The position numbers and the translations under genes are program-made. Positions 15,291 to 38,395 of a stretch of 64,000 nucleotides of DNA are shown here, in pieces. The DNA is from Malacoraja senta (Eukaryota): contig CM075993.1 in assembly GCA_038087875.1 (NCBI GenBank), forward strand, positions 434,001-498,000, read 5' to 3'. Under the pieces are notes generated by a model that searched no databases, was not told where the DNA came from, and was given only the letters and a program-made list of their open reading frames with translations. Every line of letters starts with the position of its first letter. Position 1 is the stretch's first letter.

Positions 15291-16329
15291 TGAACAAATG
15301 GACCACATGTTTCTCTCATTGAGATGTTTCTAGGCCAACAAGTGTGTGCAGCATGACAGGATTATGTTCTGCAATGAGCTTTCTCTGTGCTCACTGGTCA
15401 AAAGGATTACAGCAAGTTAGGGATTTGCATCGTCATCTACCATTAAGCTGTTGACTGATTGTCAGACTCAAACTACCAATTATTCTGTGCATCCTGATCA
15501 CTCTGATCTGCATCTACTTGGCATAGAGTTATAAAGTCATAGTCATACATCATGGAAACAGGCCCGTCATCTAACGCCCACACCAACCAATATGCCACAT
15601 CTACACCTCATACTTAACTGTATTAAACTCATTCACCATTCCTTGCCCACCTGCTCAACCGATCAAGATCCTGCTGCAATTTTTGACAACCGTCTTCGCT
15701 ATCCACAATACCACCCACTTTACTGCCATATGCAAACTTTCTAATCATGCCTATATGTTCTCATCCAAAACATTGATGTAGATGACAAACAACAAAAGCA
15801 TTGAGCCCTGAGGCACACCATTAATTACAGGCCTCCATCCGAAAAACAACCTTCCACCATCACTGTAATATTGATATATAGTGACTGAATGACAGGATAG
15901 GTTTGACTCACACTCCTATATTCTTGTGTTCCAATGTATCAATACCACAGAAGCTGACTTCACTGGGGTACCAGTCCCATCGACATCGATTCTCATCAGT
16001 GTAAGATCTACAGACACTTATTCTCACTGGGGTAGGGTTTCACAAAGACACTAATTTGGCACAGTTCCAAGGGCACTGATTCTCACTGGAGTTTATCTTC
16101 TGTTGGTGAAAGAGAGGAGAGGATGTTTCGGGTCGAGAACCTTCTTCAGACAGGGGCCGAATGTATGGGCTGGTGTAGACAGGCCCTTCAGGGAAAGCAG
16201 TAAGGCCAGCGGAAATCTGGAACTCTTCCACACCCTATTTAGATGATAGAAGTGTGGCTTCAAATGAGTGCTTCAAAATGGGAGATATTCGACTAAACAC
16301 CCACCGTAAACTTGCTGTTCCTCAGGAGA

Positions 16330-16780
16330 CGTCGAATGGGCTTCATCGTCTCATACAGTTCCTATGGCAACGGGATCGGCGCCGGCGGTCGCTCAGTGCG
16401 CCTGCGTGGGTGTCGGCGGTCCGTCAGTGCGCCTGCGTGGGTGCCGGCGGTCCGTCAGTGCGCCTGCGTGGGTGCCGGTGGTCGCTCGGTGCTGTGGCCG
16501 TGTGGTGGGCGGGATGATGGCGGCGGCGACGGCGATAGCGCAGCTCTTGGCCGACCAGGAGGTTGAGGTCCATCGGCTCAGTCAAGTGATCGAGCGGCTG
16601 CAAAGTGAAGACGAGGAGTTGCTAGTCGGCTCGGACTTGCAGAGCCTCAGAGAGGAGAACGAGAAGTTGAAGTACCGGCGACTGCACCTGCAGCGGAGCT
16701 TGCGGGCGGAGATGGCGAGGGGCCCGGCCCCACACAGCGCCGGTCCTGGGCCCCAGGTAGGGCGGCAATTATCTGGGACA
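16330..16780 (+). promoter_or_regulatory. TARS3 CpG-island promoter with an RFX X-box-like site and a 31-bp tandem repeat carrying NRF1-like sites
   Basis: CpG-rich. GTTCCTATGGCAAC at 16358-16371. About 3.5 copies of a 31-bp unit starting at 16381, 16412 and 16443, each containing TGCGCCTGCG. Confidence 0.6.
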
Positions 16781-19700
16781 GGTTGGTGTGAGGGACACCA
16801 GCTCTACTGGGCACCGTTGCCTGAACCTAAACACTGCCCATTGACCTCCCTAATTGACAAATACTAGAGTGCTCGGTGTAAAATCGTAAGGCAACCACCC
16901 CTCCCCCTCCTTATTCCAAGTATTAATGTCTTAAACATTCTCTGACTGCTTCCAACACATTAACGTCTTTCCTTAAATAAGGAGACCAATACATTGTGTA
17001 ATGACGAAAGCTATTGCATTATCCTAAAACCCCAACCAGTTTGCCACTACCCTTTAGGGTAGGACATCTGTCATCCTTACCTAAATGAGACTCCTAATCC
17101 ATTGATTTACTACCTAAAATGGTCAAGCGGTTGTATCATAACTGTGATATTAAAATGGATGAAAGATAAAACCGGTTGCCTCATTAGGGATCAACATTGA
17201 ATTTGGGGAAGTAACTGACAGGACAATAATGCTTAAAATGTGCTTTTCACAAACATCTGGTGGCTGGTGTATAAGGTGAGAGTGCTGTGTTATACTGTAG
17301 TTGAACAACCGCTTGAAATAGTTCCACTCAGAATCATTCCTTAAAAGTAGTGTTCCAAGCTCCTTCATAATCCCCTACGTCGAAGAGAAATACAGACTGG
17401 CCAGCTGAGAATTGTACCAGGCTTGGACCTGTCAAAACTGTAACACATTGTCCACAAACAGCAATAACACCATGTAAAGGAAGGAACTAAAGAATCCCAT
17501 AATTAACTGATCCGATTGAAGTTCTGCAATGCTGTTGTTTGTGGTTCTGAGTTGTGCTGGAAAATTGAACAGCTGATGAAAGTTGGTTCACAGTCATCTG
17601 TCCACAACAATCACTGAGGCTGGCCTGCAAGTGCTGAAGCAGTTGCAGCCATGTTCAAGCAGAAGGGCCGTGGATGATCCATCTAGGCTTCCTCCATAAA
17701 TTTCCCACAACACCAAAGCCACCTGTGCTTTCTCGTCCAGGCTTTCACTACTGACATTTGGGTAAATGAATACTCCTCAGTATCATGTACTTGCTGACCT
17801 TAGTCAATCCTCAGGTTTGGCGGATCACTTGCTGCTTTGAACACTTATCTTAAATAACTTTGGAAAAGAGCTGTTCTTCATAAACTCTGGCGATCTTGTG
17901 CAGAATACGTTACAACCCTGTTGGTTACATTTAAAACCAGCCCAATACTGGTTTGGGATGCATTTGTGATTGAAGATAGACACAAAATGCTGGAGTAACT
18001 CAGCGGGTCAGGCAGCATCTAAGGAGAAAAAGGAACAGGTGACGTTTCGGGTCGAGACCCTTCTTCAGGCTGAGAGTAAGGGGAGAAGGGAAGGTCTATC
18101 TTTCGGTGAAAACTAGCATCTACAGTTCCTTCCTACATTTGTGATTGATGTTGTCATTCAGGTTTACAAACAATTCTCTCTGCTCATCCCAGCCAAACTA
18201 ATTGTTGCCCTTCTCATTAGAGGGGAAAAGGCTTGATTTAGGAACAATCTGCAGGTTCTAAATTAATAAATTTTGTGATTGTCAGATTGTAGTTAGCTTT
18301 TGACATGGGAGCAGTGTAGTGAACTTACAAGGCCAGCACTCAGACGCCTGGTCTATTGATCTGCATACATGAGTTTGAATCCCATTGCATTGAAAAAGGT
18401 GGTCTTGGTACTGATCACCATGAAACTACTGCCTTGTTAAAAACCCATCTAGTTGCTCAAACAAGAAAATGTGGCACTTTGATCCCAGACCCACAACCAT
18501 GTGGTTGAATCTTAACTTCCCTCTGAACTGACCAAATGAACCTTGTGTAGTTGAAGGGCAATTACAGCTGTGCGATAAATGCTTTCTTTGCCATGGATAG
18601 CCACAAGCCATTAACAAAAAAAATCATTTTCCTGAACGTAAATGAAAATCTTTGGTGATTCCAATCCATAGCATCCAGATTACCAACATGGCAGACTGGA
18701 GTGCTGATTGATTCGAGTTTGATTCTGGTAAAACCTGATGATCGAAACTGATTCTCAGCAGCTACCCTGATGCTCCAGAGAAAACAATCCAAGTTCCCTG
18801 GTCACGTGCTCCTTGGAACATGTTTCCAAGTGGGATTGGGGAACACAAGGGAGTTACAGGAGCAAACATCATTAAAACATATATGCTTCAGGTTACGGTG
18901 ACCAAAAAAAACTATGCACCTGGCAGCTTCACAAGATGGATTGAAATTATGTTGGACCCATACAAAACACTGTTCTGACTTTGTTGTAAAAAAGATACAC
19001 AGTAAATCCTTGCTTTTCGGACCTCTTTATAACGGATTTTAGCTATAGCGGACAGACCTACGACCTTCACTGCCAGGCTGGGCAGCTGATGCCATCCTGC
19101 CCTGTGCCACCTCTCTGGCCGCCTCTCCGGCTGCTCCTACCAACGCATCCACCACGGCCACTCCTACCACCTCCAACCTGATCGCTCCCAAGCTGCCGCC
19201 GCTGCCAGAGGTGTCACCCCCACCACCGCCACTGCTACTACCACCGTCATCCCCGCCACCTCTGTCGCTGCCACTACCACCGTCAATATCACCGCCACTG
19301 CCGCCGACCCTTACCTGCACCCCGGCTGCCCGCAACCAATGACTCTGATGACCCGCCAGCAGGCCGGGGCCATCACTTCACTTGGATTCCAGGTCCAGAG
19401 TCTGACGAAGGGCCTGGTCTTCTTCAATGTTCTTCAGAGCTGCTGACCAGCTGTGTTACTCAAACACTTTGTGTCCTTTTGTGTATCAACCAGCAACTCT
19501 AGTTGTGCATTTCTACTATTTATACAATAATACTCCTTTACCAAGTTATAGTGGACAATCATCAATAACAGACACCACCTACCCTTTAAGGTCTGTTATA
19601 ACGAGGGTTGACTGTGTATATATATTTTTAGGATGATACCCGAATTATGCTTATACTCATCAAGCGTGGTTAAACAGTCTGAGGGTTTCTTCCAAAGGGG

Positions 19701-22700
19701 TGACAATGAATATTCAGTTTTCATTGGTTGGTCGGCAATGGAGAGCATTAACAGCTTTAATGTCCGGGGTGTTAATATATCAGATGACCTGTTCCAGGCC
19801 CAGCACGTAGACGTAATCATGAAGAAGGCATGTCAGCAACTCTACATTCTTAGAAATGTAAAGACATTTGGCATGACAACTAATATTTGCTACTGATGAA
19901 CTGCTGAAAGTATCTTGACTAATTGCATCGTGATCAAATTAAAGCTTTCAGAATTTTTAAGGTGAGAAAACTTATGCTGTCCACTCTTAGACCAGGGAGA
20001 ATGTTTCAATGATTTTCATCTCAATTGTATAATATTGTTTTAAAAGTTGAAATGATTGTGTTTTTATATACAAATTTGAAGAACTCGATTTATTGGGAAG
20101 GCAAGTCCAACATGGAGACATTGGAAAGAATTTCTGGAATCGCTTTCCTTGACAGCAATATGCAGAAAGAGCAAGAAGAAACCAATAACTTAGATCACAG
20201 AAACATTGGACGGGTATGGGAACATTTCTGTGGTTAGAAACATAGAAAAATAGGTGCAGGAGTAGGCCATTCAGCCCTTTGAGCCAGCACCACCATTCAA
20301 CATGATCATGGCTGATCATCTAAAAACAGTACCCCGTTCCTACTTTTCCCCTTGATTCCTTTAGCCGTAAGAGCTAAATCTAACTCTCTTGAAAACATCC
20401 AGTGAATTGGCCTCCACTGCCCTCTGTGGCAGAGAGTTTCACAGATTCACAACTCTCTGGGTGAAAACGTTTTTCCTCATCTCAGTCCTAAATGGCCTAC
20501 CCCTTATTCTTAAACTGTGACCCCTGGTTCTGGACTCCCCCAACATCAGGAACATTTTTCCTGCATCTAGCCTGTCCAATTTTATATATTTCTATGAGAT
20601 GTCCTCTCATCCTTCTAAATTCCAGTTTGATGTTCAAGGTTAAAAATGATTTGCAAATCGTGAAAGAAAACCACTGCATGGGCAGAAAAAGAGCTTGGAC
20701 AATGCAAAAGCCACTGAGGAGAAGAGAGTTCCAATTAATTTGATCCAGAGACATACTGGACATTGTGTTGTATGAGTCATAGAGCTACACAGTACAGAAA
20801 CAGGCCCTGCTGAATGTAACCATGCCAACCAAGTTGCCTAACCGAGCGAGTCCCACTTGCCTGTGCCTAGCCTATACCCCTCTATTTCTTTCCTCTCCAC
20901 ACATTTATCCAAGTGTGTTAAATATCAGAATTGTAGCCACCTCTACTACTTCCAATGGTGGCTTGTTCCTTGTATCCACACATTCTGTGAAAAAATTACT
21001 CCTTGGTTCCCTTTTAAATCTTCTCCTCTCACCTTAAGCCTCTATTTTTAAACTCCCCTACTTTGGGGAAATAGCTATTCACCTAATCTATGGCCCTCTA
21101 AGGCCACCTTTGTGAAACAGCTGCCTATAGTCCTCTCTGCTTCCTGTGCCCCGTATTGGAGGGTTATCTCCGTTGGAACAGTGAAGGCTGTGGAAAGACT
21201 TAATCAAGGTGTGCAAATTGTGGTCATGGGTGGAGTAAATAGGAAGGGCCTATTTCCTTTGGCAGTGGGATCAAAATAAACAGGGTTTGTGATGTACATT
21301 GTTTCTCATTGATTTAACTTCTATTTGCTTTCCAGGAACAGGAATTGTTTTTCTTCCATGAGCTCAGCCCGGGGAGCTGTTTCTTCCTCCCAAGAGGTGC
21401 TTTCATTTACAACACGCTGATGTCATTCATACAGGTAGGAGAGCCATTCGCTGATTTATTCATCAAAATACTAGAGTGGTGGACTCATGAACAATGAGAC
21501 ACCTCATAATCTCTCAGTTATACCTCGGTGAATGCTGTCTTGCTTCCGGATCAAGGTGGTCCCAGGTTCCACTATTTAGTTGCTAAGGTCACATCCCATT
21601 GACTGAGGGGAGAAGAGAAGTTGGGCAGATTGCTGTTTCCATGTGTTCTCAACAGGTGTCTGTGGGAACAAGAAGGGGCTGTGATAGTTGAGTAGACTGC
21701 AGACTTTAATTTCCTGGCCCCAAGTAAGAACCAGCAATCTGCTCGGTTTTACAACATCTGCTGGGGGTTTGGTGGAAAATGATGACCAATTCCTCTCAAG
21801 TATTGGTGCTGCGCTGGTGGGAGCTCGTATTTATGAGATGTGCCTTGACAATACTGTCACTGGCTTCAAAGGCTGTGGATTCAAGTTCCACTCCAGAAAT
21901 CTGAGCACAAAGTCATGGCTGACAGTTCATTGCACCACCAAGCAAGTGTGGTATGATCATACGTACGTCCTTCAGATGTTACGCTGAATATTTGGTGGCA
22001 TAATGACTCGTGGTATTGTTTGAAGGAAAAATTGGGGAGTTGTCCTTGAGGTTGCACCAATGTTCCTGGACCGCTACCACCAACAAGACCAGCTGGTCAT
22101 TCGGTATCACTGCGTTTGGATGCGCGCTTTTTGTAAAATGCCAGCCCCATTCCTTCTTTGAGCAGCAGATGTTACTATTAAGAAATAAAAGCAAAAGAAA
22201 TATGGAAACATTCAGCAGGTCCAGCAGGTCAGGTCATTTCTGAAAAAAGATAAACACAGTAAACACCTCAGGTCATACACCCCTCATATGAAAAAGAATC
22301 TTCGACTTGAAATGTTAGCTCTGCTTCCCTTTCTGCAGATGCTGCTTGGCCTGTTGAATGTCATCATTTTCTGTTCTATCACCGTTCTTCAGAAGGAGCT
22401 TCATCGGTTGTGAAGTACCTGGTGAAATCCTTTGTTTCTTGGAAGACAAGAGATGCAAGTCAGGTTTGACTGTTTGTCTGTCCTGTTGCAGTCGGAGAAC
22501 CGAAAGCGTGGGTTCAATGAAGTGGTCTCTCCAAATATCTACAGCAGACGTCTGTGGGAGATGTCTGGCCATTGGCAGCACTGCAGCCACAACATGTTCA
22601 GCTTTGATGTGGAGAAGGAGATGTTTGCGCTGAAGCCCATGAACTGTCCTGGCCACTGGTACATATGAACCACAAAAACAGTTATTGAAAAATTGGTTAT

Positions 22701-25700
22701 TTTAAATGTCTAGGCTGATATTCAGGTGATTTATCAGGGTCAACTGGAGTGAGGATCTATTCTGTCGTGTGGGTGAGCTGGTGTTTGTTACTAATCTGCT
22801 TCACAGATAAACACAGCACGGACCTTCATTCACCTGCAGGAATCCAGGGCCCTCCCTCAAAGCCCAGTGGATCTTTGCAACAATGCAGCAATGTGCAGGA
22901 AGCCCTAGAGTCCTAACATGTTGCTGAAAATGTTACCGCCCAATGAATCAAATGCAAAATGTTGAAAATGGCAAATATGGTCAAAATGTGGAATAACATT
23001 CAAATGGCAAAAATAGTTATTTATCTAAATGCTGAAGCATTTGTAGCAAGGCAGTGAGTTAATGGCACAAGTTGAAGTGAATGGGTGTGATGTAATTGTC
23101 CTCATAAAATCATGACTGCATGATGAGCAAGACTGGGATTCATCCTCTCGATGCCCAAGTGATTTTGCACATTTGAACAAGGTCTTCTCCCATTCTCCTA
23201 AACTGTGGAGAATGCAGACCTAGTCTGTTCATTTAACAAACATGCCATGGCAGGAACCAGTCTGGTGAATGTTTGCTGTAGTCACTCAGTGATAAGGTGA
23301 GGAAACCAAACCTGTATATAATTTATATGTGCAGTCTCATCAGAGCTCTTCCAATTAATATCTCTCCTCCTGTGCTTGAATCTTCTCATAAACAAAGGCC
23401 AACATTCCATTTACTTAGTTGTTTGCTGCACATGTGTGCCTGCTCTCGGTGAAGTGTGCCGATGCAAAGGTCCCAGTCCCGCTTGGGGAACCAACCTTAG
23501 CTGTAGCGGTGACATTGCAGTTACTGTCGGCTTGGCGAAGAAACTCTGCCAAAGTCTCATCACTGTCCAGCAACATCCTTTGTCAGAGTTGTTCACTGTT
23601 GTTATGGGATAGTTGCATTCACCTGGTCCCTTTGCTCAGGCGTGGGTCATGGTTGTGTGAAGGTGATGGCAGAGGTTGGCTTAGGAGATCTATTTTTTCA
23701 GTTTGTGTATTTCTTCGGGTGAGGTTAGAAATGCTGACAAAGCCATTCATGACTGACCCTGAATTGAGTTGTTTGTGAAGCCCTTTCCGCGGGCTATTTG
23801 CAGTGATCCGTATTGTGTCATGTCTGGACTCTCAGTTTGGCCAGATTGGATAAAGATGACAGATTTCCTTTCATGGAGAACTTGAGCAAAGCAGATAGGG
23901 TTTTCCCACAATTAGGAGGGTCTTAGCTTTTTAATTTTAGATTTCTGTGGCATTAATTTATCTCATTCTGTTGCATGTTTAGTAAAGAATGTTGAAATAA
24001 TCATCTGCTGCAACTCTTTCAGTTTGATGTTTAGCCATCGCCCACGTTCCTGGCGAGAGTTGCCCCTTCGGTTCGCCGACTTTGGCGTTCTTCACCGCAG
24101 AGAGCCTTCAGAGTCGTTAAACGGGCTGACCAGAGTGCGGCGATTTGAACAGGATGATGGCCACATCTTCTGCATGATGGAGCAGGTGGGAGATGAGGTG
24201 CTTCCTGGTCTCCCTGCTTAGTCTCTTCTCCATGGTAGCACCTTAAACATGAACAGAAATTGGACCAGTTATTTGCACTGGTTGTGATTTATATACTGAA
24301 GGTGTGACTCTACCTGGGTTACAGTCCCTGAAGGTGCTGACTCTGGGACACTGACATTGAACAGAGTTGGTGTGCTCACTGTTGCTTTTGGACAGCTTCA
24401 TGGAAGCTGACGCTTGCAAAGCTATGGGCCTTTATTCTATGGAATCATGAGTAAGAGACATGTGTAATTGGTGGGTGTTGATACTCACATGTCTTGAAAG
24501 ATTTGCTCTTCTTCCAGATTGAGGAGGAGATCATGGGCTGCCTCGACTTCTTGCGCTCGGTGTATGGAGTCTTTGGTTTCACTTTCCAGCTGAAACTCTC
24601 CACACGGCCAGAGATGTTTTTAGGAGACCTGAACACATGGAATCAAGCAGAAGAGGCAAGTGATAACTGGGCTAAGAGGCTACAGTATTCAGGCTAAGGT
24701 TCTTGGATGTTCCAGGAGACATGCTGGAAAACAAGTGGTTCATAATCCATCATTTCAGGCATCCAATATTTGAAATTCTCCATTTAGGAGCTGTCAAATC
24801 TCATGATGTAAAGGAAAGTTCCAGAAAGAAAGAGCTTTCTTTAGAGGCTGACTACGCTGTGTCACCTGAGAGGGTTGATCACAGACAGGCTGCTGGAAAG
24901 GGTAGACATTGGTTTCCAGTGAATGGCATCTGGACCTGAATGAGCATGAGGGTTATTAATTCCAGTTTAAAGTTGTATAAACGAAACAATCATCATCAGT
25001 TGGAGCTGAGCCTTGGTTTCTTTGCTGTTTTAGCATTTGAAGTTCAGTTTGGATGCGTTTGGTGAGGCCTGGAGACTGAGTGCAGGAGATGGAGCTTTCT
25101 ACGGACCGAAGGTTAGTGAGGGGAGCACTTGGGGTTTGAGAGACTGCTGTCAATCTTAATCTCCCAGACACTTTTACCTTCTCTAATTGACTGCAGATTG
25201 ATGTTGACGTGAAGGATGCCCTGGGCATATACCATCAGTGCGCCACCATCCAGTTGGACTTCCAGCTTCCTATTCGGTTTAATTTGACCTACGTTAGGTG
25301 AGAGTGGTTTCAGGTTGTTACTGAAACGTCTTGGAATCCTGTGTTTAAATGTTAAATCTGGGAAATAATGTTATCTGCTCCCTTCCTACCTGTCCTTGCA
25401 TGTGGGTGGTGGAGAGGAACATGCAAAGATGAGTCTGTGGGTAAATGCAGCACCGGGCAGACTGATGGCAGTGTGGACGGTCATAGTGTTTTACGTAAAT
25501 GAGCTTGAGGAGCTGGATCATGGGGAATGGAAATAGTCACTGTCCATTCTGCCCTGGATCACAGTGCATGTTGGGTTTGACAGAATGCCAGGCTTGGGTT
25601 ACATAGTTAGCTTGGGTTGTGCTATGACATCAGGGTACTGACAGCTCCCACTCACCACTAACACTAGAGATGGAATGTAAGGGTTGGTGTTGTGTACGTA

Positions 25701-28700
25701 TGTTGCTGATTCAACTTTCTGTTTGTAGCAAGGATGGAGCAGATGAGAACCGCCCAGTTATCATCCATCGTGCTGTGCTAGGATCGCTGGAACGCATGGT
25801 GGCTATCCTTGCTGAGGACTATGCTGGGAAATGGTAATGCTTCAAAGCCAAACAACACAGGGCAAGTGAGTTTCCCCACTGAGTCTCGGGTCACCCTGGC
25901 ACTGCGTTATTGGCTCTGTGGGGAATCCTGTCCAAGGTTATGTGCGTGGTGTTGGATTGAGTGCTTTGTTGGATTTGTCACTTTGTGGACGGTGCAAGTG
26001 ATGTGAAGTAGGAATTCATTATTATATTCAACCAGAAAAGCCGAACAGATGATCCATCTCAGCTTCGTGCAGAGGTGCATCTGCTGCCCACGTGCGTCAC
26101 AGAGACCACTCACCTGCCAATACAATTTATTCCATATAATGTCAGTTACCGGTTAAGAGCACAGATATGGCACAGATTGCTGGACTAGACAAGATCCCAT
26201 CTCCAGTACTGAAACCCTGTACACCAGAACTAGACATGCCTCCCGCCAAGCTGTTCCAATGTTACAACACTGCCATCTGACCGCACCATAGGGAAACTTG
26301 CCCAGGTGTGTCCTGTTTACGAGGAGCATGACGAATCCAATAGGGTGATTACCATCCAACTAATCTAAACTCAGGCAATGATAAAGTCATGGGCCCTGCC
26401 ATCAACACTGGCTCATAAGTGATAGGAGCAGAATTAGGCCATTCGACATGACATCCGGAGGCTGCAGTGCATCGTTCGATCAGCTGAGAAGGTTGGCTGC
26501 AACCTTCCCCCCCCCATCGATGAACTGTACACTGCAAGGGCCAGGAAACGAGTGAGTAAGATTATCTCTGACCCCTCTCACCCTGGCCACAAACTCTTTG
26601 AAACACTTCCCTCTGGAAGGCGACTCCTGACTGTCAAAGCAACCACAGCCAGACATAAAAACAGCTTTTTTCCACAAGCTGTAGCTCTACTCAACAGCCA
26701 AAAGTCTGTAGCCTCCTTTTGCTCTGGTATTTTATTTCATTCTTCACATGTTTAAATTACTATGTATTATTTTTAATTGTCTACTGTATATCGTGTTGTT
26801 ACTTGCAAGCAAAGCACCAAGGCAAATTCCTTGTCTGTGCACATACTTGGCTAATAAAATGTATTCAATTCAATTCAATTCAACTCAAGTCTACTCCGTC
26901 ATTCAGCCATGGCCAATAACCCTTGACACTCATACTAATCAAATGGCAATTGGCAATATGTGTCAAATGGTAATAACCAACTCACTGATGCACAGTTTGG
27001 ATTTGGCCAGGACCATTTGGTTCCAGATTTCATCAGAGTCTTGATTAAATTGTGAACCAAAGCACAGTATGTCAGAGGTAGGGAGTGATTGCCCATGATA
27101 TTGAGGCAGCCTTTGACTCAATATGGCCTCTATCAGCATCGCGAGACCCTGCAAACAGTGAGCTGGGAGCTCTGTAAACACAGGCTCACTCAGTGGGCTT
27201 CCTGGAAGCACCAATGTTATCTTGGGGATACTTTGATCCCTTTGACATCGCCATGCAAAAGCTCCTTAATTTGAATGGATGGACAATGCGAGATACCTAG
27301 GGTGATGATGAGCATTAAACAGCATTGTATGAGTTGCTGGATAATGGACTGTGTTCTGAAGACAGGAACTTGAATATCTGGTATTTGAACTCGAGTCATC
27401 CAATCATGATGTAAGTATTGAATACCGCGATGGTTGAATTGTTGTAAAACTCATTTCACCGACTCGTGCTTCGTGGGGAAAGAAATTTGTCTTCCCGGTC
27501 ATCCAGTGTTACTATTAGTGACTGCAATCCCACCAGTGTGGTTGACTCTCAGGGCAAGTTGAATTGGACATTAAATTACCCCCACCCCCCATTTCAGTGA
27601 TGTTCCCATCCCTTACCTGAATGAAAGTATCCATTTCCCAATGTTGTTGAGTTGAATGGAAAGGTGCTGGTGCTGCATGTGAACTGCTTGTTATTTTGGT
27701 AACTAGGATTATCTCATTATCAGCATTCAGATCTGAAGACTCCATTTATCTTGTGGTAGATTTTCTGTGCCTGTGCCATCTGATCTTGTTGTTCATTTGG
27801 TATTCATTTGGGCTGTCTCAACTTGCCACTTTTGTTAAATTCAACAAACTTCTTTTCTTGACCTTTGGCAAAAGAAACTCGGCCACCCAGTTTTCTGAAT
27901 CCCCTGTGCCGGGTATACTTTAATCTTGGGGTTGGGTTGGAGTGTCTGGTATGTGAGGCTTTATCAGTCCTGGAGAAGTTTCACAGTTGGATTGGGCTCT
28001 GTTACCTGTATCAGGATGGGCGAATCAGATGTGAGCACAGCAGGGTGTTGAATGAAAGAAGACATTTGCTAAAAAGCGTTGATAAAGAACTTATCAATGT
28101 CAGAACAGATATCACAGGCTTCGTTAACTTGCTACAGCTGGGCCGTCGAGATTAAACCAGAACTTATCCTCACACCGTCTGTCTCACAGGCTTTCCCTGG
28201 GCGATTGGTCTGTGATTATCCCACTGCCCCTAGATTGACCTTTGTCTTAATTGTTTATCCACGTTCCGCCCTCCTGACTAAAGTAGGGCTGGTTTGTTGT
28301 TCCCTCTACACGAGTGACTGATTTTGATGGGAGATTTCAGTGGAAGCAGAATGAACATTACCTGTGGGGAATCGGGACAGTACTCCCTTGGTTGGGATGT
28401 CAGATCCGTTCAGGGGCCTTTTTCACTGCCATGCCCAGCTCCTCCACACCATATTTAAACTGCTGGTGGGGAGGGAGGGGGGCGGTGCTACCTCTCTGCC
28501 CAGCACACAAGGAATGGCTTCTGGCTACAGGTGGGAACTGGCTTTCTCTCCGGCCTGTTCCCCAAAATTGGCAAAAAAATACAGGAGGTCCCTGTGGGAG
28601 CATGCATACGAAATAGTAATGGGATACAAAAACAGGCCCTTCCACCCAACTTGTCCAAGATGCCTGCTGTGAGCTACTCCCATTTGCCTGCGCAATGCCC

Positions 28701-31299
28701 ATATCCCTCAGAAGCTTTACTGTCCATGTACATGTCCGTGTCTTTTACACATTGTAATTAAAACCGCCTCTGCCACTTCCATTGACAGCTCGTTCCACGT
28801 ATCCACCACCCTATGAGGAAAATGTTGTCCCTCAGGTTCCTATTAAAGATTTCCCCTCTTATCTTAAAATTATGCCCGCTTTTTTAATGGTCCCCTACCC
28901 TGGGAAAAGACACACCTTATCTATGCCCCTCATGATTTTACTAACCTCTGCAAGATCACGCTCAGCCTATCCAACTATTACATCTATTAAATCTTCCAGA
29001 CCATAACAACCTCATATCTCTTTTATATATTTTCCACTTGAATGACATCTTTCCTGTAGCAGGGCGTGTAAAACTGTACACAGTACTCCAAATGTTGCTT
29101 ACCAACGTCTTGTGTAGCTGTAACATGACGTCCCAACTTCTGTACTCCATACTCTGACCAAAGAAGACAAAGATGCCGAATGCCTTCTTCACCACCCTGA
29201 CTAGCTTTGTTGCCACTTTCACTTAACCATGTACCTACATCCCTAGGCCTCTGTGTAGGAAGGAACTGCAGATGCTGGTTACACTGAAGATAGACACAAA
29301 ATGCTGGAGTAACGCAGCGGAACAGGCAACATGACTGGATAGAAGGAATTAGTGACATTTCGGGTCGAGACCTACAGAATGAAGGGTCTCAGATCTCAGA
29401 ATGGAGAAGGGTCTGAACCTGAAACATCACCCATTCTATCCAGAGATGTTGCCTGTCCTGCTGAGTTACTCCAGCATTTTGTGTCTGTCCCAGGCTTCTG
29501 TGTTCTACAACACTCCCCAGGTCCCTGCCATTCATTGTGTAGATCATGTGTGGTTCCAACACCTTGCATTTATCTGAATTTAATTAGATCTACTCACAGT
29601 TGATAAAGATCCCATCGTAATCTTAAATAACAATCTTCACTGTCCACTCACTATACTACAAATTATCGTGTCAATCTTCGTGGTTACCTGTTTAAAAAAT
29701 CTCGAACAAATCATGAGACATGATTTCCCATGCACAAAGATAGGGGGAGTTCAGGGCTAGCATGTTCCGGTAGAGTGAATGGCAAGGATGGCTGGAATAG
29801 GGAACCCATGGAAGATATTGAAGTTATGGTCAAGAAAAAGTAAGGAGGCATACATCAGCTTTAGGTATCTGAAGACTGGTGTGTGTGAATGCAAGGAAAG
29901 GCCTGAGCACTACAGATCAGTGAGCCTAACATCAGTGGTGGGTAAGGTGTTGGAAGAGTTTCTGAACAACAGGATAGTGGCACACCTCTACCCATCTCAT
30001 GAAAGCCTTTCACTTGCCTGTAAACAACCTCCCCCAATTACCTACTGAAATTTCCTTTTCTAATACCATTAAAATCGTGTTTATCCACATTTTGAACTGG
30101 TTGGACCAGTACTATCTTTTTCTGTAACTGTTTTAAAATAGAATGAAAAACCGTTAATTACTGAATGATTTGCATGATATTTTAAAACAATTTGCGTGAT
30201 ATTTTTAAACAATTTCTACTTGTTTAAATCTAGGCCTTTCTGGCTGTCGCCGCGGCAGGTCCTGGTGGTCGCTGGACCAGGCTGTGAGGAGTATGGCAGG
30301 AGGGTGAGCACAAGCTGTAACTTCCTTGGGTGACGTGCCACCTGTGCCAACAGCTCCTGACTCTCGTTTCTTGTAGGTTTGTCAGGAACTGACTGGGGCT
30401 GGTTTCATGGCAGATGTGGACCTGGACACTGGCTCAGTGCCTTATAAGAAGAAGAATTCTCAGCTCGCTCAATACAACTTTATCCTCGGTAGGCAAAACC
30501 ACTCTGCTCTGAGATCTTGTTTTGACAGCCTGCCCTCCCCACGGCCCCATTGCCCTTATTCAGGCAGGTGCAGCTATTGGGGCAGACCTGAGTACTGCCT
30601 CAAGAAGATGTGGAAAGATCACTCCTCGATTTCCCAGCTAAGGCCGACATTCATGATGCATTTTCTCTGGTTTGAATTTCTACCTTGATTGTGATAAATG
30701 AATGTTAATCAATTTGGTGCTACCATGGAACTTTCAGGGGTATAGTGTGGGCTTCCCTACTTTGAAGATGTGCTTGCAGGGTGGTGAGGTGAAAGGCAAG
30801 TGTCCTCAGTCTAGAGATAGCAGAGCAGAGGGACAGAGGCATCATGCCAGCCACAGGGACCCACACAGAAGATACTGGGAGAAGGTAAAACAAGGCTGAG
30901 GGTAGTGGAGGATTTGGACATTCCCATCCACACCAACAGGAGTGGGCATTGATGACCCTGTGTGTCTTTTATGTTTACACTGTGCAAGTTTGCTGAAGTT
31001 TTTGTTCCATGTTGGTGAGTTGTACTGAAGATGGGTCCATTTTTATGGCACTTCTTTTGCTTGCAGCGGTCGGAGAGAAGGAGAAGATGAATCACACAGT
31101 GAATGTCCGTATGAGAGATAACAAAGAGCATGTCGAGCAGTCATTGGCAGCAACGCTGGAGCAGCTGAGGTGGCTGCAACAGCAACGAGCTCCGAGGGCC
31201 CAGGAGGATTTCCAGCTTCCAGTCTGTGGTCGGGCGGATCCAAACCGTGACGTACTGAGAATTATAGCACCATGGAAGCATTCAGAAATATTAAAATAA
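16514..31299 (+). CDS. TARS3: Threonyl-tRNA synthetase-like paralog (TARS3/TARSL2), 12 detectable coding exons, about 546 aa, lacking TGS/N2 editing exons
   Basis: Exons with compatible phases: 16514-16756, 20082-20213, 21336-21434, 22492-22658, 24023-24185, 24518-24655 (GC donor), 25034-25111, 25197-25297, 25729-25833, 30234-30303, 30377-30488, 31067-31299 (1641 nt). ThrRS motifs include [74 protein letters not shown] and VGEKE. Exon 1 encodes the ArgRS-like leucine zipper typical of TARS3. The gene is adjacent to TM2D3, as in mammals. Confidence 0.9.
19000..19614. mobile_element. Possible Tigger/pogo-like MITE enclosing a CCA/CCG-rich low-complexity tract
   Basis: Ends CAGTAAATCC...TTATAACGGA and TCTGTTATAACGAGGGTTGACTG form imperfect TIRs. 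Confidence 0.45.
20234..20625 (-). mobile_element. CR1 LINE 3' end in TARS3 intron 2
   Basis: ORF track shows [16 protein letters not shown]; same family as 62178-62622. Confidence 0.75.
26455..26885 (+). mobile_element. Rex1/Babar LINE 3' fragment in a TARS3 intron
   Basis: [23 protein letters not shown]...[10 protein letters not shown] followed by AATAAA and an (ATTCA)n tail. Confidence 0.75.
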
Positions 31300-32286: not shown

Positions 32287-32603
32287 NNNNNNNNNNNNNN
32301 NNNNNNNNNNNNNNNNNNNNNNNNNNNNNNNNNNNNNNNNNNNNNNNNNNNNNNNNNNNNNNNNNNNNNNNNNNNNNNNNNNNNNNNNNNNNNNNNNNNN
32401 NNNNNNNNNNNNNNNNNNNNNNNNNNNNNNNNNNNNNNNNNNNNNNNNNNNNNNNNNNNNNNNNNNNNNNNNNNNNNNNNNNNNNNNNNNNNNNNNNNNN
32501 NNNNNNNNNNNNNNNNNNNNNNNNNNNNNNNNNNNNNNNNNNNNNNNNNNNNNNNNNNNNNNNNNNNNNNNNNNNNNNNNNNNNNNNNNNNNNNNNNNNN
32601 NNN
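32287..32603. other. Assembly gap (317 N)
   Basis: Run of N between TARS3 and TM2D3. Confidence 1.
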
Positions 32604-32659: not shown

Positions 32660-32778
32660 CGGCCTTTATTTCCACTCGCCGCTGATTGGTGGCTTTCCGC
32701 GCGGGCTGTGATTGGCCCGGCTTCTCCGCGGCGTGATTGGCCGGTGTGGGTTGCCCCTCATTGGGCGGGGCAGCAGCA
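32660..32778 (+). promoter_or_regulatory. TM2D3 promoter: four reverse CCAAT boxes and a GC box within a CpG island
   Basis: ATTGG at 32685, 32711, 32736 and 32760; GGGCGGGG at 32763-32770, just before the ATG. Confidence 0.65.
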
Positions 32779-35700
32779 ATGGCGGCGAGGAAGCTTCTGC
32801 AGCGTCTGCTGCTGCTGGTGATGGCGGCGGCACTGGGAGCGGGAGCGGGAGCGGGAGCGGGAGCGGGCAGCGGTGAGTGCGGGGCCGGGGCTGCTCCTGA
32901 TGGCGGCGTTAATGGGAGCGGGAGGTGAGTGCGGGCCGGGGATCCGGACCCTGCCCGCGGTGGAGAACCTGGGCCCGGTCGGGGCGATGCGTTGGGCCTA
33001 ACCCCTTTACTTCTTGTCCTCAGAGTCTCCGAGTACCGGCGCCCCCGATGGCCTGCTCCAGTCCCGGGGCACCGGCATGCCCGCCGCCGGCGGCTTGGAC
33101 AGCACCCGCGCCCAGCCCGAAGTCGGTAAGTAAGCGCTGTGTGTGTGTGGCGGCCACGCCAGCTGGGAGCTCCACGTTCGCCGTGCCGCCGGTCTCCCTA
33201 CAATCACCATCTCTCTCTCCCTCCCCCCAGCGCCAACCACGCTGCCGCCCTACCTGGCGAGATGCCCGAGCGCCGGGCCGTGCAACAGGCTGCCGCCCGA
33301 CTGTGTCGACTGCTCGCTGCATTCTAACTGTGTCTACGGAAAGGAGGTTTCGTTCAACTGCACAGTCAAGCCAGGCGTACAATGCACGGTAAGTAACCGA
33401 TGCAACAAAAGAGGAATCTGGTAGATAGATCAGAGGAACAGGCCCTTCGGCCCACTATGTCTATGTCAACCCCACTTGCCAGCAGATTTTGTGTATGCCC
33501 AACCAGGCTTGGGGGCTTTCATGGCCTGCTGTTTATGTTCTTGTCTAGGTCAAGTAGTGCCAGAATTAACCTAAAATGTTGACTCATTTCATACACAATA
33601 ACTGATGTTTTGTGGCATTTTTTTCTTCTAATTATATTAAGGAACACAAAATTCTTAACAGCAAACTCGATCTGTTCAGCTTCTCGAGGTTCCCATGTGC
33701 AAATGGTTATTGGTTTTGTCTTTTTCCGATCTATTCTGCGTTTGTGTTTGCCTGTATGGGAAGCCAGCCTCCAGGTGTCTTGCCAGTATTCTTTACTCAG
33801 CTGCAAGTCAGTGCTACATGACTACAGCTGTTGAATCTTTCATTGTTTTGGGAGATAGTGGCAGTCTGTCAGGTCCCTTTGAGGATCTGTCAGAACCAAA
33901 CTAGTTCTATCTGGTTGTGTGACTAATATTGTGGCTACAAGAGTAGGTTTGATACTGGGTAACCCGCTGGTGTCCCAATGGCCTTCCACCATCTACGTCA
34001 GGATGTGATTACTTGCCAAGGCTATCCTGGCAGCAGCCTTCAAATCTGCAAGAAGAATAAGGGCAGCAAATGCACAGGATTGCGACCACCCACAAGTATC
34101 CTTCAGTTGCGCACCATCCTGACAACTCCACTGCTATTACTGTGTCTAAATCCTTGAACCTCTGCCCCACTGCAGCTGTTCATGTTAGTCTTAAAGGTAA
34201 TTAATGTTGGACAGTAAATACACTTTGCCAGAAAAATGCCCAGATCTGAAAACATAAATTTAAAAAAAATGTTTCTCAGCCTTTAGCTTCTAATGTAGCA
34301 CACTCATCCTTGGTGGAACATGGTTCAGGCATCTGGCAATGCTGCCACTCTGCACCCACCCCCAGCTTTGTAAATGAGACACTTGAATATTGAAACCATT
34401 CACAACCTTGGAGGGGAAAAAGGGTTAGGATTGCAGTGGTTTATCAGAGGTGATAACTGGAGCCCTACGAGGAGCATGGGAGAAAAACATAGCTACCATG
34501 GTGTAGATTAGCTGACTTTGCATGTAAAGTAATGGATTCTGGCGCATCAGTGACTTTGTTATCAATTATTTATTATTGTTCACATGTTTTTATTCTGTTT
34601 GCTACTCAGGATGAGAATAAGATAGAACAAAAAACATTTTGGATATCAATGGTCTGTCAGTTCTGTTGGCAGTTGCCTCCCACTCTGTACCAGTGCAAGG
34701 AAAGTACGAAATGCAAGACGGTGCGGTGCCCACGTGAATACTTTATTTCCAACTGCACAGCTCTGGAACATGTGCATTGTCTTGGTAGGTAGTCTTCGAA
34801 GGGGCAAACATTGGTGCTGTGTGATTTGTGTAGCAATGTTACAAAATTTTGAGATTTAAAAAATAAAGTCTGCAATTTATCCCATCAGATAAAGCATAAA
34901 AAGAAGTTTAATTTGACACTTAATTCACTTTCATATCTTCAGTATTAAAAAAGTTATGGCCATTATCATACTCAGAAATTAGCATCTAGTTCCCTATTGC
35001 TTTTCCATTGACTTAACACAAAAGCTGTGATCGAGGACAGTTAAAAGCCCATAACTTTCTTAAAAATTATGGTAACTGAAAGAAATTTTCAGGTATTATA
35101 GATTGAAGCATTCTGAAACAAATATGAAACAATCTTACTTCGAAGACATGAAAGTAAAGCATATAATTAGTTAGTTACCTAATTGTAGCTAATTACAAAA
35201 TTCAATTACTAGATCTAAACATCTATCAATTTCTTAAGAATAGGTTAACATTTTTAAATAGCCTAAGTGTCCAAATAACATTCACACAATAATTCACAAT
35301 ATAACATAATTTTTAAATCTAATTTTCATGAATTTACAGGCCAAATGGAAGGAATTGAATGTTTAATACCTGTAAATTAATGGGCATTTAATTCATCTTG
35401 CGAGTGAGAATTTCTGGAACGCGATCTTTTGGAACGTTCATTTGCGGTGAATTTAACCCCGTATTGGCATGAAAAATACTGCCGTTAATTCGGGGAATAA
35501 AATCACCGTGTCGCATGACAAAATGTGAATTAAAGGCTTCTTAAGAAGCACTTTTATACATTTAAAGAAAGCACTTTTGTTTACCTGTCCATTGTGTGAA
35601 ATCCGTCCCCGTTATTGGCGTTGACGCTTCAGGAGCTGCTTTTAAAATGACTGTAGCGCTGACATTGACGATTTAATTTTTTTAAAAAATTCACAAATCG

Positions 35701-38395
35701 CCGGTAGGAACGATTTTGTCAGCGAAGGTTTGTACTCCAACAAAATATTTCCAGGACAAGGGAGGAGAAACCGCGTTTTAACCCCGCCCCCCCCCTTAAA
35801 GGCGCCAAAATCGCGCACACGGCCAGTGGCAGAATTACAGCGCGACTGAAGGTAAGTTTTGTAACATACCTAATTTGTGTCCGTGCAATGACTTTATTCA
35901 AGATATGGATAGTTCTGCTATAATTCAATAGTTGCTTTCCTAAGAAACTGTTCATCATAGAAAATCCCTAACCCTGACCGAATATGTGGTATTCCCAAAG
36001 TCGTCAATGATTTATCCAGTTAGCCATATGGAAATACGTGAACCAATGGTTTAATAGATTTGGTGAAGTCCAAGTAGTTTAATCATTTAAATGTATTGGA
36101 CAGGTGTAAAAAATAACAATGTTGATTCTTATTTGATAAGCTATAATACAAAGGATTAAAATGATGCTGTAATAACTAATCAAAAGTCAGGTTAAGTTAA
36201 ATAGTTCTAAGTAGTGCATCCAGGAAGAGTACATTGGGCATTGAGGGAAGACAGTGTTGATGTACTAGAGCTGATAACTGAATTCAGGCACGGATTGCCA
36301 GGGTCATGTTCCCTGGCATATGAAGGTTTAATGACTGGATCAAAGTTACAAGTGAGGGAATACTGCTGGGATAAACAGAATCAACTATTTTGATTTTGGA
36401 AAGGCTTAAAAATAGGGGATGCAGGTGAAGAATTGAGACCACAATGGTTTTCAGCAATAACCGTAAACATTGCTGTGAACTTGTGGACCTTTTTCTACAA
36501 ACTGCAATTTATTGTGTAATTTGTTTATAATTTTTTTTTTTTTAATTGTTAAAACCTGATCGATTGCACAGGTCCTTGAGATGTGCCAACTCTTTTGCGT
36601 GGCTTTGTGCTCTGACAATTTGGTAAATATTGTCAATCAAATCTGGGCTGCATTTGACTGAGTGCTGCTGTGATGTCATGCGGTATTCCTCAGACCTCCT
36701 GGCGTCTGTACCGGGTCCACGTCCATCACTTATTCGTTAGGTTGGCACCAAGACTACTTTCACTGTAGTGATTTCTTGACCACTCTGACACAGACAAAAC
36801 ACACATAGAACACATCAAATGTAAATGTCTCGAAGTCTGAGATTTTGTTTTCTTTGTCAGGTAATCGCACATTTCAGAAGAAGATGTATTGCAATTGGAC
36901 AGGGGGTTACAAATGGTCAACTGCTTTGGCTCTGAGGTAAGGAAATATTTTGATTCTTGAGTGAGGATGTTTTGTTTTTAAACCTTTCTGTATGCTAGTT
37001 AATAGTCCCGTGGTAAGTAAGGTCGTTAAGAACGATTTTGGCCGTTTCTTGCATGAAATGCATCCCCCCAGGGATATCTGATTCTTCTGCCTCCACTCAG
37101 TCCCCACCGATCATCACCCCGTACCTTGGTAGTTATGGCCACAATGACTGGTGTTGAATGTAGAAAACTTTATAATTGGCCCTTTGATAGTTATTTCTGG
37201 AGCACTGATTGCATGTAAAGCCAGCATTTATTGCATTACATTAATTGCTGCATGAATTTAATTACTTGCCAGACTAGTTCAGAGGACAAAGATGTACGGC
37301 TGGAAAACTCTGATCAGTTAGAGATAATGTCTTGAGTCAATTACTTTAGGCCAGAATTGTAGCCTCATTTGCTTGGAGTGCATGGATTAGGTGAGGGTGG
37401 CAGTCTTGCTTCCCTGATAAAACATTGCCATTGCATTTTGCCCAAATCTGACAATTCTATAATGACAAATGGCAGCATTTGATTTCAGTGATTTATCTGA
37501 TTGTAATACTCTTAATATGTGAGCAGCAAGGGTTTGGAGTATTTAAATCTTTTGGAGTGTGGGATACTTACAAAAGGTTTCAGCTGAGCAAATGAGGGAC
37601 AGTGATAATATCGATTCAAAATTATTTTGATACAGTTCTATGGTCAGAATCAAAGGCCTGATTAGTTTCAATTGACCTGATTTTTTTTTGGGGGGCGGGG
37701 TTTGAGAGCTAATCTCTGGTGAGGGAACACATTTTGACGTGTTCATTTTGGATTGAGCAAAACAAAACTTTCATTGAAGCTGTGTGGTCTTTTTGACTGG
37801 CAGTATTTGCATTCCCAGTAACAAACCGTTCTCAATCTTTGCAGTAAGTCATAGGTTGTGTTATATGGTTGTTGTTTTTTCCCACTTAAGCAGATAACCT
37901 ACATGAACGCAGGCATTCTGTGGCTCTCTCGACTCATTCCAAACAGTGATTCATTATGTAGAACATTTGAAAATGTTCATCTGCAGCAAACTGTGTCATA
38001 TAATATCTGTTGACAGCGGGGAGTGGGTGGGAGGGGGAGACACTGGATCGTGATCAGCAGCTGGGCTTGGGTTAATCGGTAAACTTTCTTTTACCAGGAC
38101 ATGGGCTTGACTAGTATCTAAGAGCAGGTGTTGAACCCACACTTCTAACCAGTTTGCTATCATGTAGACATGTTCATTCTCATGCATATACTTTCTCTTT
38201 GCTTAACTGAAATTTTGATTTGATTTCAGCATCACTTTGGGAGGGTTTGGAGCTGACCGATTCTATTTGGGCCAATGGAAGGAGGGTCTTGGTAAACTCT
38301 TTAGCTTTGGCGGCCTTGGAATATGGACCTTGATAGATGTGCTGCTAATTGGGATTGGCTATGTTGGGCCTGCTGACGGCTCGTTGTACATCTGA
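32779..38395 (+). CDS. TM2D3: TM2 domain-containing protein 3, 6 exons, 256 aa
   Basis: Exons 32779-32872, 33024-33125, 33231-33388, 34610-34784, 36861-36936, 38230-38395, all GT-AG and in frame (771 nt). Encodes a signal peptide, a Cys-rich ectodomain (CNRLPPDCVDC, CQFCWQLP) and the TM2 domain YCNWTGGYKWSTALALSITLGGFGADRFYLG...GPADGSLYI*. Confidence 0.95.
34833..35870. mobile_element. Non-autonomous DNA transposon, about 1.04 kb, in TM2D3 intron 4
   Basis: Terminal inverted repeats GCAATGTTACAAAA ... TTTTGTAACATACC, flanked by TA on both sides; no transposase ORF. Confidence 0.7.

Follow-up and report, generated by a model that had tools for sequence, protein, structure and literature searches.

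To our knowledge, vertebrates have a single duplicated synthetase gene, TARS3 (TARSL2), which is a vertebrate-specific copy of cytoplasmic threonyl-tRNA synthetase (ThrRS). The human protein, ThrRS-L, holds two leucine zippers within Met1-Cys74 and needs both of them to enter the multisynthetase complex via AIMP1/p43 and ArgRS (PMC6794377). The N2 domain of ThrRS is its post-transfer editing domain (PMC5909460). TARS3 charges and edits in vitro, yet mouse and zebrafish show no change in tRNA(Thr) charging after deletion of Tarsl2, and the role of the protein is unsettled (PMC10200997). A 64,000-bp stretch of the genome of the skate Malacoraja senta (assembly GCA_038087875.1, contig CM075993.1, positions 434,001 to 498,000; hereafter the window) contains a ThrRS gene with a TARS3-type zipper and a catalytic core, in which the exons for the TGS and N2 domains are missing. 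The locus is read here as the elasmobranch ortholog of TARS3, which suffered an old deletion and whose in-frame remainder is under selection. We put the probability of this reading at about 0.7.

Gene structure and the missing exons

The gene model was built on the plus strand from six-frame translation, tBLASTn matches and splice sites. It has 12 exons at 16514-31299, with a coding sequence of 1,641 nt for 546 aa and neither a stop nor a frameshift. An earlier note on this DNA had also arrived at 546 aa in 12 exons. The splice sites comprise 21 canonical sites and one GC donor, and the acceptors are all AG. From the N to the C terminus the gene encodes a TARS3-type leucine zipper, the last N2 strand with a linker, the class II catalytic core and the anticodon-binding domain, distributed as follows:

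16200-16800, no strand: CpG island over the gene start (GC 0.50-0.71; CpG observed/expected ratio 0.72-1.10, compared with 0.40 in the whole window)
16514-16756, plus strand: exon 1, 81 aa; two-helix leucine zipper (Ha, Hb) and a short Pro/Gly tail
16757-20081, plus strand: intron 1, 3,325 bp; site of about eight exons (linker, TGS, N2) in other vertebrates
20082-20213, plus strand: exon 2, 44 aa (NSIYWEG...DHRNIGR); last N2 strand and linker helix; phase 0 at both ends
21336-21434, plus strand: exon 3; start of the catalytic domain, motif 1
22492-22658, plus strand: exon 4; ends in MNCPGH, whose Cys is a Zn ligand
24023-24185, plus strand: exon 5; motif 2
24518-24655, plus strand: exon 6; followed by the GC donor GCAAGT in place of GT
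25034-25111, plus strand: exon 7; reads ...GDGAFYGPK
25197-25297, plus strand: exon 8; the vertebrate-invariant Arg of GRYHQC is Ile
25729-25833, plus strand: exon 9; IIHRA (with the Zn-ligand His) and motif 3 (GSLER)
30234-30303, plus strand: exon 10; start of the anticodon-binding domain; 1-aa deletion
30377-30488, plus strand: exon 11; anticodon-binding domain; LNKKIRNAQ motif changed to PYKK-KNSQ
31067-31299, plus strand: exon 12; TAA stop at 31297-31299

Exon 1 resembles residues 2-70 of the gar TARS3 N-extension (tBLASTn expect value, E, 1e-6), pike TARS3 (tBLASTn E 3e-5) and whale shark exon 1 (E 7e-19); the donor (CCCAG followed by GTAG) is common to skate and whale shark. Its 3' end is in phase 0 at the donor GTAGGG. 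The next ThrRS exon is also in phase 0, and the join from 16756 to 20082 spans 3,325 bases, which agrees with the phases and the distance of about 3.3 kb given in the earlier note. Exon 2 is preceded by AG and aligns by tBLASTn with gar TARS3 residues 356-405. Exons 10-12 align with gar residues 690-800, and Pfam HGTP_anticodon matches the exon 12 piece weakly (E 0.003). The earlier note describes all indels in the remaining exons as multiples of three, and relative to gar they are whole codons: exon 2 has one of 4 aa and one of 1 aa, and exons 10 and 11 have one of 1 aa each. Exon 12 has CAG in place of the ancestral stop after ...QEDF, which adds 28 extra residues (31210-31299); fugu has TGA directly after EEEF. 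The GC donor of intron 6 (24656-24661) is identical in a second skate, and the corresponding fugu donor is GT. Directly 5' of the ATG, the CpG island contains a 31-bp tandem repeat (16381-16492, 3.6 copies, 90% match).

The missing exons were sought with two query proteins, gar TARS3 (P0255) and a full-length TARS3-type protein from pike (P0029, from the representative search with exon 4). The pike protein has a 170-residue N-extension followed by Pfam TGS, tRNA_SAD, tRNA-synt_2b and HGTP_anticodon domains. Both were compared with the whole window by tBLASTn at a word size of 2 and E up to 10-20. The comparison recovered exon 1 and all exons from NSIYWEG on, and gar TARS3 residues ~71-355 had no match anywhere in the window at E<=20. 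Profile hidden Markov models (HMMs) of TGS and N2, made from ~215 vertebrate TARS1/TARS3 sequences, were run against all stop-free six-frame pieces. In the window their best scores do not rise above noise (E>5). In the positive control, the TARS3 locus of fugu (L003), the same models found six of six TGS and N2 exons at E 1e-10 to 1e-25, the TGS ones at E 1e-21 to 1e-24. Of N2, only the last ~25 residues are left; they lie in exon 2, which has no Pfam tRNA_SAD match.

Intron 1 has zero N in its 3,325 bases. The claims of the earlier note that this intron has no gap and that the TGS and N2 domains are absent both hold up, the latter across the window and with the fugu control positive. Its statement that the intron contains only repeats was checked in part: one element resembling a short interspersed nuclear element (SINE) lies at 17969-18138, and the rest has no recognisable protein domain or coding content. 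The SINE-like element, ~100 bp long, occurs ~20 times in the window, on either strand and at 78-93% identity, and has many copies in the whale shark locus too. The homolog searches returned teleost, tetrapod, gar and coelacanth proteins, with no full-length cartilaginous-fish TARS3 among the best 120 of 8,000 scored candidates; within that range the lack is suggestive.

In fugu TARS3, a phase-0 intron separates ...IYK from SSSTYWEG at exactly this point; therefore, exon 2 of the skate gene starts at the ancestral acceptor. Downstream of exon 2, the positions and phases of 10 of 10 introns are equal to those of fugu TARS3. Since exon 1 ends and exon 2 begins in phase 0 and exon 2 sits at the ancestral acceptor, the loss looks like an intron-to-intron deletion of about eight whole exons (linker, TGS, N2). 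Such a genomic deletion, which is probably old, would have taken the lysine-rich linker, TGS (N1) and nearly all of N2, after which the phase-0 ends would join in frame.

The gene is assigned to TARS3 because it has the zipper exon, shares its intron positions with fugu TARS3 and is followed on the same strand by a TM2-domain gene. The tree places the skate protein within the vertebrate TARS1/TARS3 clade (support 99/99), where its placement is a polytomy. The TM2-domain gene (32737-38392, plus strand), probably TM2D3, matches Pfam TM2 at 38219-38392, and its first exon, near 32780, is GC-rich and signal-peptide-like. In human, TM2D3 adjoins TARS3. The only N run of the window (32287-32603) lies between TARS3 and this gene.

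Constraint on the remaining protein

The core of the skate gene is under purifying selection. The product of the open reading frame (ORF) over exon 4 recurs unchanged in Logan contigs of a related skate, from two sequencing runs; when the ORFs over exon 1, intron 1, exon 2 and exon 12 were looked up by their exact products, none matched. A second-skate contig (L002, 5,234 bp) aligns to window 20828-25945 and spans exons 3-9, or 283 codons and 851 exon bases. Its introns differ from those of the window by 3.4% mismatch and several indels; therefore, it comes from a closely related skate and not from the same genome. Exons 3-9 have 15 differences between the two skates, 11 synonymous and 4 nonsynonymous, where ~79% would be expected to be nonsynonymous under neutrality (binomial P 1.8e-5). 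The Nei-Gojobori estimates are 0.006 for the nonsynonymous rate (dN) and 0.065 for the synonymous rate (dS), with a dN/dS of 0.09. Nonsynonymous sites are 0.6% different compared with 3.4% in introns (six-fold less, Fisher P 7e-6), and synonymous sites are not reduced. Gap columns number 0 in exons and 61 in introns, and all splice sites are conserved in the contig, including the GC donor. Three window segments in introns 8 and 9 (25315-25573, 25946-27957 and 28326-28872) are absent from the contig and represent lineage-specific insertions or deletions.

The whale shark provides an independent comparison, with a chromosome-level assembly. Two short whale shark proteins, NCBI models named 'threonine--tRNA ligase(-2)-like' of 178-240 aa, resemble window exons 3-4, and the locus (L001) was located via the longest isoform (P0409). 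It contains the zipper exon, followed 7.7 kb further on by exon 3 and exon 4, and no TGS or N2 was found in it by tBLASTn or HMM. The same absence in this independent assembly makes a collapse in the skate assembly unlikely. It also points to a deletion older than the split between sharks and skates, although the introns are not alignable and independent losses are possible.

Exon 3 is 94% identical to that of the whale shark and has 1 synonymous change relative to the second skate. Between skate and whale shark dS is 0.84, with a dN/dS of 0.11 in exons 3-4 and 0.44 in exon 1, and a 22-residue stretch of the second zipper helix (Hb) is identical at 21/22 positions. The low dN/dS of exons 3-4 indicates that these whale shark exons were constrained through most of their history. 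The proposal in the earlier note that selection has kept a zipper and core without editing is supported by the ratios in exons 3-9 (0.09) and exons 3-4 (0.11) and by the near identity of Hb; in neither the skate nor the whale shark comparison is dN/dS near 1. As far as these comparisons of sequence can tell, the skate gene is not a decaying relic. One whale shark isoform reads exon 1 in another frame. The whale shark TARS3 remnant lies inside the range of an opposite-strand gene whose product matches Pfam ENTREP_C.

The skate protein was aligned with 218 vertebrate TARS1/TARS3 sequences and, for a broader comparison, with 39 diverse ThrRS. The universal columns, defined as at least 90% conserved in the 39 diverse sequences, number 100, and 96 of them are kept. 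One exon 1 alignment artefact aside, the losses are Y161N, N240R (N364) and G244E (G368). The Zn ligands are kept, as the earlier note had stated, with the Cys in MNCPGH, the His in DDGHIF and the His in IIHRA (E. coli C334, H385 and H511) all present, and GSLER is kept too. Exon 5 aligns with residues 341-392 of E. coli ThrRS (1qf6) and with human ThrRS (E 1e-24). In the alignment of exon 5 with 1qf6, the equivalents of R363, E365, R375, Q381, D383 and H385 are kept. So are the equivalents of what we take to be Y462, K465, Q479, Q484 and R520 of E. coli ThrRS, and the roles of all these residues are likewise assumed. The residues predicted to form the threonine, ATP and Zn site are shown to be retained.

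Contrary observations and alternative explanations

Several observations weigh against reading the locus as a selected TARS3. Of 177 columns with at least 98% conservation in vertebrate TARS1/TARS3, the skate protein deviates at 31, or at ~26 of ~170 without junction misalignments; the median number of such deviations in the other sequences is 0 and the mean 1.4. In the maximum-likelihood tree its terminal branch is 1.23 compared with a median of 0.13 (~10x). The motif 2 loop departs from the canonical HRNE.SG, having Arg at the N364 equivalent and Glu at the G368 equivalent. These two positions are 100% and 95% conserved in the 39 diverse ThrRS, and both are invariant in the 218 vertebrate sequences. 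Changes at vertebrate-invariant positions cluster in the exon 2 N2 strand (7), the motif 2 loop (5) and the LNKKIRNAQ motif of the anticodon domain. Given ~26 changed conserved positions and the long branch, canonical activity may be lost. A core-only tree does not separate a TARS3 placement from a TARS1 placement. The exon 2 acceptor is not strong (a short T-rich stretch, then AAG), and the estimate of selection within skates covers exons 3-9, with 15 substitutions. The whale shark adds to these points. At the place of exon 2 it has a 55-nt exon (L001 17207-17261) that leaves the zipper out of frame with the core, and whose nucleotide similarity to skate exon 2 is not above shuffled controls. 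Whale shark exons 5-12 were not found within 11 kb downstream, a stretch with two small N gaps, and the NCBI models stop after exon 4. It looks as if the truncated gene has not been kept intact everywhere, the whale shark copy being further eroded. From this eroded copy it follows that at least one lineage can do without the truncated gene, and the whale shark lineage may have lost the intact protein recently.

Taken further, these points would make the gene a unitary pseudogene, in which a dispensable TARS3 was killed by the deletion and decays slowly in slow-evolving elasmobranch genomes. The very long branch, the many changed invariant positions, the lost ancestral stop, the single GC donor and the broken look of the whale shark copy would all fit, as would the viability of TARS3 knockouts (PMC10200997). 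However, a pseudogene is improbable with a dN/dS of 0.09 between skates and 0.11 relative to the whale shark, and with no indel in 851 exon bases compared with 61 intron gap columns. The conservation of every splice site (GC donor included), the retained CpG island and a 1,641-nt ORF that is intact despite a dS of 0.84 to the shark also speak against decay. It is far less credible still that the TGS and N2 exons are real and were collapsed or omitted in the assembly. A single assembly of the species was examined, and no independent contig over intron 1 was retrieved, which leaves some room for such an artefact. However, intron 1 is free of N, and the same absence between exon 1 and exon 3 occurs in the chromosome-level whale shark assembly. 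In addition, residues that never vary in proteins with an N2 domain have been lost from the remnant in exon 2, which fits partner strands that are long gone.

Another explanation accepts an intact gene and gives it a conventional activity. The protein would be a fully active ThrRS without editing, contributing to charging and causing some serine mischarging of tRNA(Thr), on the pattern of yeast mitochondrial ThrRS or the engineered E. coli enzyme cut short at its N terminus. The residues for Zn binding, threonine recognition and adenylate formation, with roles that we assume, are present, and the anticodon-binding domain is retained. We also count in its favour the N-terminally truncated E. 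coli ThrRS of Dock-Bregeon et al. from 2000, which is said to charge tRNA and to mischarge serine. However, the equivalents of the universal motif 2 residues N364 and G368 are changed, the Arg of GRYHQC is Ile, the KKIRNAQ motif is altered with a deletion, and even TARS3 of full length is not needed for charging in vivo. A fully active enzyme is therefore a serious candidate but an unlikely one.

Proposed function and known systems

For the selected TARS3 remainder, a spliced protein would be made from the 12 exons and would dimerise through its class II core. It could dock on AIMP1/ArgRS through the zipper, both helices of which are in exon 1, and its catalytic pocket would bind threonine and ATP. 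If the protein does charge tRNA(Thr), it would not clear its own Ser-tRNA(Thr), and TARS1 editing in trans would be needed. The earlier note offered two alternatives, a mischarging enzyme or a repurposed threonine/ATP-binding protein. In line with these, the skate protein may be an auxiliary synthetase prone to errors, or it may belong to the complex as a threonine/ATP binder whose handling of tRNA is altered. We lean slightly towards a role in amino-acid/ATP binding and complex membership over bulk charging, because the motif 2 loop and the anticodon-domain motif carry unusual substitutions and because TARS3 is dispensable for charging. We take both of these elements to contact tRNA; a literature search on the anticodon-contacting Arg gave no confirmation.

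The simplest reading is that the retained function of TARS3 needs neither the editing domain nor the TGS domain. As a tentative proposal, which has a reasonable chance but is not the expected outcome, elasmobranchs may keep a cytosolic ThrRS paralog without TGS and editing, probably dating from before the shark-skate split. Its pocket and zipper would be selected and its tRNA-contacting elements remodelled. The role for which vertebrates keep TARS3 would then be one for which amino-acid binding and complex membership suffice, such as sensing or regulation, and not charging or proofreading. Skate TARS3 is a natural domain-deletion experiment that points to the parts bearing the function under selection. 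Being simple, the protein also lends itself to telling apart error-prone charging, threonine sensing and complex regulation.

As far as we found, a vertebrate cytosolic ThrRS paralog that lacks TGS and N2 and keeps its docking zipper under selection has not been described. We know of no other natural editing-less cytosolic ThrRS paralog in a vertebrate. The closest described system is TARS3/TARSL2 (ThrRS-L) of mouse and human, with which the skate protein shares the ArgRS-like two-helix zipper and the cytoplasmic-type ThrRS core (PMC5909460, PMC6794377, PMC10200997). It differs from vertebrate TARS3 in lacking the second half of the N-extension, TGS and N2 (~546 compared with ~800 aa), in its much faster-evolving core and in the 28-aa tail added by the lost stop. 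Yeast mitochondrial MST1 (PDB 3ugq and related entries) is likewise a natural ThrRS with catalytic and anticodon-binding domains and no N2. However, MST1 is the sole, essential ThrRS of its compartment, whereas the skate protein is predicted to be a cytosolic spare copy with a docking zipper beside an editing-proficient TARS1. The crenarchaeal split ThrRS (ThrRS-cat and ThrRS-ed) and the engineered N-truncated E. coli ThrRS are also cores without editing in cis, in which editing occurs in trans or is absent. These differ from the skate protein in being primary synthetases or laboratory constructs, and the skate gene is not known to have a separate editing half. Insect SLIMP (cited in PMC5909460) resembles it as a selected synthetase duplicate that evolves at an accelerated rate and whose catalytic or tRNA-contact elements are altered. 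Unlike charging-less paralogs such as SLIMP, the skate protein has an amino-acid/ATP/Zn site that is essentially complete.

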